NCBI RefSeq assembly: GCF_000143415.4
Contig: NW_003314352.1
Span: 302,278 to 366,277, forward strand
Reading direction: 5' to 3'
Length of the DNA: 64,000 nucleotides
Source of the DNA: Selaginella moellendorffii
Taxonomy: Eukaryota > Plantae > Lycopodiophyta
The notes beneath the pieces are model-generated. The model was not told the origin of the DNA, ran no database searches, and worked only from the letters and a program-made list of their open reading frames with translations. A program made the translations under genes and the position numbers. The number at the start of each line of letters is the position of its first letter. Within the stretch, counting starts at the first letter, position 1. This document shows, one piece after another, positions 21,068 through 23,906 of the stretch.

Positions 21068-23906
21068 ATGTTTCCCAATCCTTCGCAGCATGAGCAAAAC
21101 GCGAATGCCGCCGCCACTCACTCCAAGCATTCGCCGGAGAATGGCGACGCCGCAAATCCAGTTTTTCATTTCCATCGCCACTCCAACTCCAATCCACTCG
21201 ACAGCATTCTCATCACCCGCATCCACTCCGACCGCAGCGCTTCGGCACCGCCACCGGCACCCGTGCCTCCTTCGCATCCTCTTATCCGCGATTTCCACCA
21301 GCATTCCTCCTCTTCTTCTTCTTCCTCCTCATCTTCTCCACAGCATATCTCTCCCGTTGCTCCTCCAGTGCCTTCTTTGCCTCCACTGCCGCCAAGTTTT
21401 TTGCCTCCTACCCGAGCTCCGGTCCCAAGGCCGCCAAATCTATCGCTCCCCCGGCACAGCGCAGGCTCGCACGCTGACGACGAACCAATGTCGAGTGTTA
21501 CCTCGCTTCACCTTAGAACTCCCAGCCCGTCAACAAGGTGGCAGCCCTTCCCTCGGACACCAAGCTTGCCTTCTTCTAGTCCTCTTTCGGGGCCCTGGCA
21601 CGGTCGAAACTCCAGAGAAGTAAGTCCGCATGGATATTACTCGGACTTTGGGGAGGCTTTTACGACACCCGGCCCTTCCAGTCGTGCAAGCGCTCTATGC
21701 AGCCATCAAGAAGAGGTTCCTTGTGTATTGGTTTCTCAAAGAGTCTACTAAAAGTTTAGCTGCTTCGTCAGGTTGAGGAGATCGTAGAGAGAAGACAAAG
21801 CAGGCCCGAGCATCAGGAAGGTGTTCCTCGAAGCAAAGTTGCCGTCGGCAACAGTGACTCGCTAGACGGTGGCGAGCAAGCATCAGTTCTCGATCCAAGT
21901 ATGTTATGCTTTCAAAGTTTTTGAGTTGATGGTCGTTTTGCTTGCAGTTCAGGACTTGAAGTCATTGGAAGAGGCAGTCTCCATTGGACAGCCCACCATG
22001 GCAGAGTATTTCTTGCATAGGGGTTATAATCCGGATGGCGAGGTAGATTCCAAGGTAACCTTGAGTTTTCGCTCTTTAAAGTTCACTCAATGCTTGTCTT
22101 TTTCTAGACTCCTCCCTTGATTCTTGCTGCGGGGCTTGGGAGGGAGAAAATAATCAAAATGCTTCTTGCTGCTGGAGCAAATATAAACCGTCGGGACGTG
22201 GGTAACTCTACCGCACTTCATCACGCAGCAGCCACGGGCCATAGGTGTGTTTAGTCTTGTTTTTCCATTGCCTTTTACTAACTTTGACAGTAAGACTACC
22301 TGCAGAGGGGCGGTCAAGCTTTTGCTTGTGGCTGGTGCCGACATATTCTCCACAAACAACGACGGACTTCTGCCTGTGGATCTGACTCGTGACAAGCGCA
22401 TCTACGATCTTCTCACCAGTCGGATGGGACATAACTTGTCTCCAACATCGTTACGTAGGGGAGAACGTGGTCCAGAAGAACTGTTCAGCCCAAACAGATC
22501 CGAAAGAGCTCACGACGAGGAGAGCCTCAGTGGAAGTGACGGGCTGGAGAGTCCCTCGCGTATTAGCCATCTAGTGCCGAATTCGTTCATAAGACCTCAA
22601 CAAGAGAAAACTGAGGAGGCAAACAGAAACCAACACGAACCCGCTGAAGCCGAACAAAAGAGAGAAAAGAAATCCGTCAAGTTTATACCTCCAACGGATG
22701 AAGAACTCTCGTTGATTCGGAAAGACTGGCACGATGCTGCTCGAGCCGGGTGTGTTGGCTGTGGAAACGAAGGATGTGAAGGGAAGTGTCTGCCACCAGA
22801 GAATTCTCCACGGGAAGAGAAAGGAAAGCATCTCCAAATACGCGGATCATTTCGATGGACCAGGGGTGAACTGCTTGGTGAAGGTGCTTACGGAAAGGTA
22901 CTGCTGCTACTACAGCTCTGGTTTTATCAACTTTTGATTTCAGGTCTTTGCCGGGCTCAACCAAACGACCGGCGAGCTCATGGCAGTCAAGCAGCTGAAG
23001 ATTGAACCCACCGACGGACAATCAAGAGCCGTTTATCTAGCTTCTCTGGAAAGAGAGATCGACTTGTACAAGCAGCTGAGGCACAGACATATCGTGGGAT
23101 ACATCGCCATGGAACAGGACGAAGCCAACAATCTCCTCTACATTTTCCTCGAATACGTGTCAGGCGGTTCCATCCAAAGGTAACCTTTGTTTCATTTTGC
23201 AAGATCTTCTGTGATGTAACATCTCGCCATTGCGCACACAGCATGTTGGAAAGATTCGGCCGTTTCAGCGAGTCCTTGGTTAGAATATATACGCGCCAGC
23301 TTCTACTGGGCCTGGAGTACCTCCATGCCAACAAAATCGTCCATCGAGATATCAAAGGTGGCAACGTTCTCGTGGATGCAGATGGTGTTGTGAAGCTAGC
23401 GGATTTTGGAGCCTCCAAGGTAAACAAAGTTCTTATTTCTTTCTCTTCAACACCACATTTCTGCAGGCTTTCCACGATCCAACGATCACAGACGGCTGCA
23501 AGTCAATACGGGGCTCCGTGTTTTGGATGGCCCCGGAGGTTATCAAGGGCGACGGCTATGGGCGGCGTGCTGATATCTGGAGTGTTGGCTGCACAGTCAT
23601 AGAAATGCTTACAGCCACGTACGTAAACTCAGTGGTTCTTTGTTCCACAAACTTGCGAGCTTTCCAGACATCCGTGGCCCGGAATCGACAACACCTGGAC
23701 GGCAATCTTCCACATTGCGAAAGCCAGCAGCGGGCCTCCAGTGCCAGCGGACGCATCAGAATGTGCCAAAGATTTCTTGCAGCAGTGCTTTAACTTAGAA
23801 GCGAGATCGCGACCGACTGCAAGCCAGGTATGATCCCGTGCTGGGCTTTCATGTCGCTAACGCTCCTTGGCAGCTTTTACTACACCCCTTCGTGGCACAA
23901 GACTGA
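21068..23906 (+). CDS. MEKK/STE11-type MAP3K with Pro/Ser-rich N-terminus and ankyrin repeats; start codon uncertain
   Basis: Ankyrin exons [52 protein letters not shown]. Kinase [74 protein letters not shown]. Stop TGA at 23904-23906. Confidence 0.9.

Follow-up and report, generated by a model that had tools for sequence, protein, structure and literature searches.

The locus studied here, in a 64,000-nucleotide stretch of Selaginella moellendorffii DNA (hereafter the window; contig NW_003314352.1, positions 302,278 to 366,277 of the forward strand), raises the question of whether ankyrin repeats and a MEKK-type kinase are joined in one genuine plant gene and, if they are, where such a kinase belongs. 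The plant MAP3K classes (MEKK, Raf and ZIK) were built on Arabidopsis and crops, and ankyrin repeats are recognised only in the Raf-like kinases. We consider it probable that the locus is an intact, transcribed spikemoss gene for a STE11/MEKK-type Ser/Thr kinase of approximately 789 residues, which belongs to an old green-lineage clade and is presumed to act as a MAP3K. The kinase is not a new kind of enzyme; what the locus adds is a well-supported MEKK-type clade with regulatory parts of its own, namely ankyrin repeats and, in streptophytes, a four-cysteine (Cys4) motif.

Gene structure and domain order

The gene lies at 21068–23906 on the plus strand of the window and has ten coding exons with a coding sequence of 2370 nt (789 codons plus stop), which runs from the start ATG at 21068 to the TGA at 23904–23906; an in-frame TGA at 21038–21040 stands upstream of the start. 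The initial ten-exon model was obtained by reading the sequence together with its splice signals, and was then corrected by spliced contigs of public runs (X1, X3, X6 and X7 below). Pfam and all sequence searches with the gene were run one exon at a time, and the 892-aa Diphasiastrum protein P0039, with which the exons are colinear (60–94% identity over the conserved motif and the kinase exons), stood in for the full-length product. The features are as follows:

20804..20891, plus strand: 5'UTR exon; joint 20891->21029 is GT..AG (run X3), and the 5' limit is set only by contig cover from ~20804
20892–21028, plus strand: 5'UTR intron (spliced contig, run X3)
21068..21715, plus strand: coding exon 1 (the exon itself from 21029); open reading frame, donor 21716 from X1 and X3 joints
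21772..21898, plus strand: exon 2, part of the linker; joints 21715->21772 (X1, X3) and 21898->21948 (X1, X3, X7)
21948..22054, plus strand: exon 3, degenerate N-terminal capping ankyrin unit; spliced joints and homology
22108..22244, plus strand: exon 4, a complete ankyrin repeat plus the first half of the following one; Pfam, joints 22054/22108 and 22244/22306
22306..22897, plus strand: exon 5, junction exon; translation, X3 contig record 9, joints 22244/22306 and 22897/22944
22944..23179, plus strand: exon 6, kinase N-lobe (VAIK lysine, alpha-C glutamate); Pkinase 2.2e-09, joints X3 and X6
23242..23419, plus strand: exon 7, catalytic loop HRDIKGGN and DFG; Pkinase 3.2e-18, joints 23179->23242 (X1, X3, X6) and 23419->23467 (X1)
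23467..23618, plus strand: exon 8, activation segment including MAPE; Pkinase 8.2e-12
23668..23827, plus strand: exon 9, kinase C-lobe; Pkinase 0.0038, preceding intron 23619–23667 predicted by homology
23874..23906, plus strand: exon 10, last 10 codons and TGA; intron 23828–23873 predicted by homology, completes RPTASQ/LLLHPF as in the orthologues
24097–24810, minus strand: Cwc15 gene, convergent neighbour; Pfam 7.8e-76

The encoded protein begins with a disordered Ser/Pro-rich N-terminus, followed by approximately four ankyrin units, a disordered linker, a conserved helix with a CxxCx4Cx3C cluster, and the kinase, which occupies the last ~350 codons (22850–23906), so that the regulatory parts are N-terminal to it. 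Exon 1 (216 codons, Ser/Pro-rich and predicted to be disordered) contains a short conserved GPWHGR patch and has a weak colinear match to residues 90–155 of P0039; no Pfam family matched this exon. A donor for intron 1 at GT 21620, which would end exon 1 at 21619, was ruled out by spliced contigs, which use 21716 instead. Exon 3 fits the consensus LxEAV...LLxxG of the family alignment (A1), and is 52% identical to the pre-ankyrin region (190–220) of a Selaginella paralogue, P0019. Exon 4, which is 70% identical to P0039 315–357, scores above the gathering threshold of Ank, Ank_2, Ank_3 and Ank_4 (Ank_4 1.4e-08, Ank 3.1e-08, Ank_2 4.6e-07), which identifies the product as an ankyrin-repeat protein. 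Exon 5 opens with the remaining half of an ankyrin repeat and the C-terminal cap, which extend to ~22430 and are seen by Pfam as a weak ankyrin continuation (Ank_5, 0.096), passes into a disordered low-complexity linker, carries the helix and Cys motif at 22667–22789 (the segment begins KKSVKF) and ends with the start of the kinase and its glycine loop (22850–22897). The Cys cluster itself comprises 13 residues (22751–22789), and the C-terminal kinase behind a small Cys cluster that the original prediction had described was borne out, with the ankyrin part first and the kinase last. An in-frame acceptor considered for exon 5, at 22291, is used by no contig; the contigs splice either at 22306, which is in frame, or at 22295, which shifts the frame. 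In the kinase exons, identity to P0039 is 78% in exon 6, 94% in exon 8 (767–816) and 77% over a colinear match in exon 9 (818–870), and orthologues are 90–92% identical in exon 7.

Relatives and phylogenetic placement

With exon 5 as query, 36 proteins were found among 1.84 billion representatives, with the orthologues at 43–58% identity; about a dozen of the 36 align outside the ankyrin part, to the pre-kinase segment, and both Ank and Pkinase are present in several. In a second search, which used the motif and kinase region of the fern protein P0002 as query, the upper tier was filled by Ank plus Pkinase proteins, and their neighbours carry the names NPK1 or STE/STE11. A search with the non-kinase half of P0039 was dominated by generic ankyrin proteins, added only one protein, Ceratodon P0157, and gave no seed-plant member. 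The members of the clade with both domains come from ferns (two species of Adiantum), lycophytes (Diphasiastrum complanatum, and a 776-aa protein of S. moellendorffii under the NCBI name "ste20 isoform X1"), mosses (the orthologue LOC112280062 of Physcomitrium patens, and Ceratodon P0157), streptophyte algae (several from Closterium, Spirogloea and Chlorokybus) and chlorophytes (Tetraselmis, Myrmecia, Chloropicon and Tetradesmus). The liverwort Calypogeia fissa stands in the same upper tier, and in the one liverwort model found Pfam shows a kinase only. The best match in most exons is Diphasiastrum P0039; Selaginella P0019, with 70–94% identity from exon 4 onward, is a paralogue and not this gene. 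The gene's own protein was absent from the results of all three protein searches (exon 5, P0002 and the non-kinase half of P0039), and may be unannotated or mis-modelled in the databases.

The kinase domains, with P0039 representing the window gene, were placed in a quick tree of 114 domains and a careful maximum-likelihood tree of 66, which agree. In the careful tree one clade (34 rows, 100/98) unites all 22 ankyrin-bearing kinases, and it contains a streptophyte subclade (15 rows, 98/94). The neighbouring clade is that of ANP/NPK1 (21 rows, 95/89), which takes in every flowering-plant sequence and also has its own members from Selaginella (P0331), Diphasiastrum, Adiantum and Ginkgo. Since each of these four genera has both kinds, the two clades are old paralogues. 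P0039 and P0019 lie outside the ANP/NPK1 clade and the exons of the gene match P0039 best, which places the gene outside the ANP/NPK1 subgroup. The separate MAP3K-like subfamily that had been suggested is thus supported as a distinct clade (100/98) for which no paper was found, its role as a MAP3K being presumed.

The sister of the ankyrin-kinase clade in both trees is a group of oomycete STE11 MAP3Ks from Phytophthora and Aphanomyces (99/98), which differ from it in being without ankyrin repeats. The P. infestans kinome paper lists ankyrin repeats only with the AGC and TKL groups (PMC3019232).

The nearest flowering-plant relatives of the family are the ANP/NPK1 kinases (Arabidopsis ANP1-3 and tobacco NPK1), which are likewise of the STE11 type and have 50–55% identity to the family kinase domain, but differ from the gene in clade, domain order and accessory parts. 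ANP/NPK1 proteins have an N-terminal kinase and, at the C-terminus, a regulatory tail to which NACK kinesins bind, a layout opposite to that of the gene with its N-terminal regulatory parts and C-terminal kinase, and to our knowledge they have neither ankyrin repeats nor a Cys motif.

Despite heavy sampling of flowering plants, neither kinase search placed any of their proteins in its upper tier, and this absence is read as a probable loss of the ankyrin-kinase branch in flowering plants; the clade would accordingly serve as an example of gene loss toward this group. The Ginkgo protein Gb_22086 falls within the ankyrin-kinase clade on a long branch, has no ankyrin repeats and shows HGD in place of HRD. 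Its best matches are proteins of the ankyrin clade (297–324 bits), and seed-plant sequences, which are NPK1-type or mis-named, follow from ~242–260 bits.

The helix-Cys4 motif

Between the linker and the kinase, 25–82 residues before the glycine loop, the family carries a motif with the consensus DLxLIRxDW[HR]xAAxxG followed by CxxCx4Cx(1-3)C, which matched no Pfam family. It is present in Zygnematophyceae, mosses, lycophytes and ferns, and the cysteine pattern is kept in the gene itself and in 22 of the 26 inspected family proteins that have a recognisable glycine loop. The motif is missing from Chlorokybus, two Closterium paralogues, Ginkgo and the chlorophyte members, with both parts lacking in Ginkgo and the chlorophytes. 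Partial forms also occur: paralogue P0019 has kept the cysteines and lost the DW..AA helix, and a moss fragment (P0006) has a degenerate Cys cluster.

The conserved helix before the Cys cluster is amphipathic. In an AlphaFold (AF2) model of residues 285–892 of P0039, the mean pLDDT is 69; the ankyrin domain (model residues 1–120) forms helical hairpins with pLDDT above 90, the kinase (320–600) is also modelled with confidence, and the linker is disordered. The motif appears in this model as a short helix with a pLDDT of ~55 that is docked to nothing. The spacing of the four cysteines suggests a putative zinc-binding site.

Kinase type and proposed function

All catalytic motifs (GxGxxG, the VAIK lysine, the alpha-C glutamate, HRD, DFG and APE) are intact and readable in exons 5 to 8, and the catalytic columns are invariant in the 29-member alignment A1. 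When single exons were searched against the sequences of solved structures, MEKK2 (9p6a) was the best match of exon 6 and the second of exon 7; with the kinase domain of P0039, MEKK2 (9p6a) scored 245 bits and ASK1 173 bits, followed by STE20-group kinases, and no Raf or TKL kinase was among the best 60 PDB matches. From this ranking we infer a STE11/MEKK-type rather than a Raf-like kinase. The STE11 assignment made beforehand therefore stands, with MEKK2 as the best solved relative and ANP/NPK1 as the nearest flowering-plant kin. In the MAPK Group nomenclature, plant MEKKs are said to share the signature G(T/S)Px(W/Y/F)MAPEV; the activation segment of the gene has Val for Pro, and the remainder agrees. 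Judged by these residues, the STE11-type kinase that follows the ankyrin module and the Cys4 motif looks active.

The protein would be a MAP kinase kinase kinase with MKK-type kinases as its substrates, as suggested by the fact that MEKK2/3, ASK1 and NPK1/ANP are all MAP3Ks. The ankyrin domain may dock a partner or restrain the kinase, while the four cysteines, if they bind zinc, could form a small knuckle beside the N-lobe with a regulatory or docking role; regulatory phosphorylation may act on the long Ser/Pro-rich stretches. Regulation from the N-terminal side would parallel that by PB1 in MEKK2/3 or by SAM/RA in Ste11, where the regulatory domains also precede the kinase. MEKK2 and MEKK3 (MAP3K2/3) resemble the gene further in that an N-terminal domain for protein interaction and a long linker precede their C-terminal kinase, a likeness that does not imply orthology. 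Their N-terminal domain is PB1 and not ankyrin, and we know of no Cys motif in them.

The alternative that retains most weight, although we regard it as rather unlikely, is that the protein is an active STE11-like kinase working outside a MAPK cascade, either in cell division and the cytoskeleton, like Cdc15 or MAP3K-epsilon, or as a redox sensor based on its four cysteines. Such STE11-like kinases exist, as the CDC class noted in the oomycete kinome paper illustrates (PMC3019232); the sister group consists of oomycete STE11 kinases whose role is unknown, and the Cys cluster is conserved and matched to no known domain. The closest characterised kinases by sequence (MEKK2, ASK1 and NPK1/ANP), however, are all true MAP3Ks, which favours the MAP3K reading. 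A bolder form of that reading holds that the ankyrin/helix-Cys4/MEKK proteins are a third ancient green-lineage branch of STE11 MAP3Ks with a zinc or redox knuckle of their own, which was lost outright by flowering plants and drives a MAPK pathway of algae, bryophytes, lycophytes and ferns that has no counterpart in Arabidopsis. We put this forward tentatively, as a conjecture with somewhat less than even chances; if it is true, the lack of an Arabidopsis counterpart would explain why the family has escaped study.

Transcription, splicing and selection

Contig sets of four public runs from four studies were aligned to positions 20200–24700; the run type was recorded as guessed RNA, and spliced forms are present. 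GT..AG joints were found at 20891/21029, 21715/21772, 21898/21948, 22054/22108, 22244/22306, 22897/22944, 23179/23242 and 23419/23467, by which coding introns 1 to 7 are confirmed by spliced contigs (four studies). Removal of introns 8 (23619–23667) and 9 (23828–23873) was not seen in the contigs of the four runs; these introns are supported by the colinearity of exons 8 and 9 with P0039 (94% and 77%) and by strain indels of 11, 12 and 6 nt inside the two introns, an 11- or 12-nt indel being tolerated within 23619–23667; the sizes of the coding indels and the excess of synonymous variants in the kinase exons (below) speak for them as well.

The contigs also bear on whether this copy still works. 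It could be argued that it is decaying or non-functional, and that the working gene is the annotated paralogue P0019, because contig depth is low (3–13), introns are retained, run X1 uses the frameshifting acceptor 22295, and no matching protein was found in the databases searched. Because of this acceptor and of the intron retention in several contigs, part of the RNA is unproductive. Against decay, the ten exons are open with all catalytic residues present, and kinase exons 6 to 10 contain 6 synonymous variants and 1 non-synonymous one (3 and 1 in exon 9), compared with 4 and 7 in the linker exon. The coding indels are only of 6 and 12 nt and preserve the frame, whereas those in introns measure 1, 2, 6, 8, 11 and 12 nt. 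Furthermore, this copy has kept the full helix and Cys motif, which is partly lost in P0019, and most of its exons are closer to the Diphasiastrum orthologue. The gene is transcribed and under purifying selection, and its decay is improbable.

Contig cover is deeper from 23240 on than upstream, and it rises sharply over the convergent Cwc15 gene. Antisense read-through from Cwc15 is a plausible source of the unspliced contigs, whose deep cover spans 23240–24076 and which carry no strand information.

Integrity of the ankyrin-kinase fusion

The claim that the end of the ankyrin repeats and the start of the kinase share one open exon was confirmed, with the refinement that the true exon (22306–22897) lies inside the ORF 22247–23005, which reads without a stop from the latter half of the last full ankyrin repeat through the linker and the Cys cluster into the kinase glycine loop. 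Contig evidence, which could have separated the two domains, joins them instead: record 9 of run X3 (1007 nt) consists of 22106–22242, 22304–22895 and 22942–23179, and hence carries the ankyrin exon 4, the junction exon 5 and the first kinase exon 6 on one molecule. That the ankyrin and kinase parts are two adjacent genes merged by annotation, as might be suspected from the many unspliced or partly spliced contigs and from the failure to recover the gene's own product from protein databases, is hardly credible given the stop-free exon that holds both the ankyrin end and the glycine loop, the contig that bridges exons 4, 5 and 6, and the presence of both Pfam domains in at least 22 orthologues from independent genomes and transcriptomes. 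The fusion is thus no artefact of gene merging, as proposed at the outset; the shared exon 5, the bridging contig and the same layout in the orthologues all speak for it.

Ankyrin repeats N-terminal to a kinase are likewise found in plant ILK/VIK (Raf-like group C1) and in animal ILK and TNNI3K, but these kinases are TKL/Raf-like and some are pseudokinases, whereas the kinase of the gene is STE11-type and catalytically intact as far as its sequence tells. The notion that it is after all a Raf-like/TKL ankyrin kinase of the ILK/VIK kind, with an ordinary plant architecture, has next to no standing, as Pkinase scores above PK_Tyr_Ser-Thr in every exon, among solved structures the kinase is closest to MEKK2, ASK1 and STE20 kinases, the best 60 matches including neither Raf nor TKL, and the HRDIKGGN catalytic loop, the sequence of the activation segment and the NPK1-type nearest plant kin all argue against it.

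Prior descriptions and flagella

A full-text search found no published description of a green-lineage ankyrin plus STE11 kinase, which is weak evidence since most subscription journals lie outside its coverage, and the word ankyrin is absent from a 2015 survey of MEKKs in which Selaginella, Physcomitrella and Chlamydomonas were sampled. As far as searched, the family is widespread, machine-predicted and apparently unnamed. The layout had been called atypical; in the sense of rare, this was not sustained: clade members with Ank and Pkinase range from chlorophytes to ferns and are predicted in public proteomes. Of the possibility that the architecture is already described and widespread, only the second half holds, as no description was found in the literature. 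As a candidate for lineage-specific MAPK signalling, the clade can be tested in model bryophytes, for which the Physcomitrium orthologue LOC112280062 is available.

A correlation with the retention of cilia had also been proposed. Zygnematophyceae lack flagella, and the link is rejected because Closterium and Spirogloea, both of this flagella-less group, have kept the gene. Within land plants there is a loose fit with swimming sperm: flowering plants have no copy and Ginkgo has a divergent one, and the gene is present where sperm swim.

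Splicing and length variation

Intron 4 of the ankyrin-kinase gene (22244-22306) is spliced to two acceptors in the contigs of the public runs. The acceptor at 22306, seen in run X3, keeps the reading frame; that at 22295, seen in run X1, shifts the frame and leads to an early stop, and its use may represent unproductive splicing. Within the linker encoded by exon 5, contigs from three runs carry an in-frame 12-nt insertion relative to the window (CAAGAGAAGCCG at 22600), reflecting either polymorphism in length or a difference between haplotypes.

The spliced 5' leader harbors two tiny upstream ORFs (within 21029-21063) ahead of the main ATG at 21068:

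ATG 21029, + strand: upstream ORF 1, 3 codons
ATG 21043, + strand: upstream ORF 2, 6 codons

The 5'UTR exon also contains a GGCGAT hexamer microsatellite (20824-20850), at which contigs from several runs break or diverge, with loose ends at 20824 and 20844.

Neighboring genes

The kinase gene is flanked upstream by a divergently oriented kinesin motor gene and downstream by a convergent spliceosome gene, with ~190 nt between the end of the latter and the stop codon of the kinase gene:

19236-19818, minus strand: exons of the kinesin motor gene (Pfam Kinesin, 1.5e-16 and 1.7e-08)
24097-24810, minus strand: Cwc15/Cwf15 spliceosome gene, single ORF (Pfam, 7.8e-76)

Contig cover of Cwc15/Cwf15 is high, and within 23240-24810 unspliced contigs of raised depth extend from it across the last four kinase exons, hence antisense read-through into the 3' end of the kinase gene is possible.

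Divergent members of the clade

The second Selaginella copy (P0019) retains the four cysteines preceding the kinase domain and has lost the DW..AA helix. Ginkgo has kept one member of the ankyrin-kinase clade, Gb_22086 (P0069), which sits on a long branch, is devoid of ankyrin repeats and has HGD in place of the catalytic-loop motif HRD.
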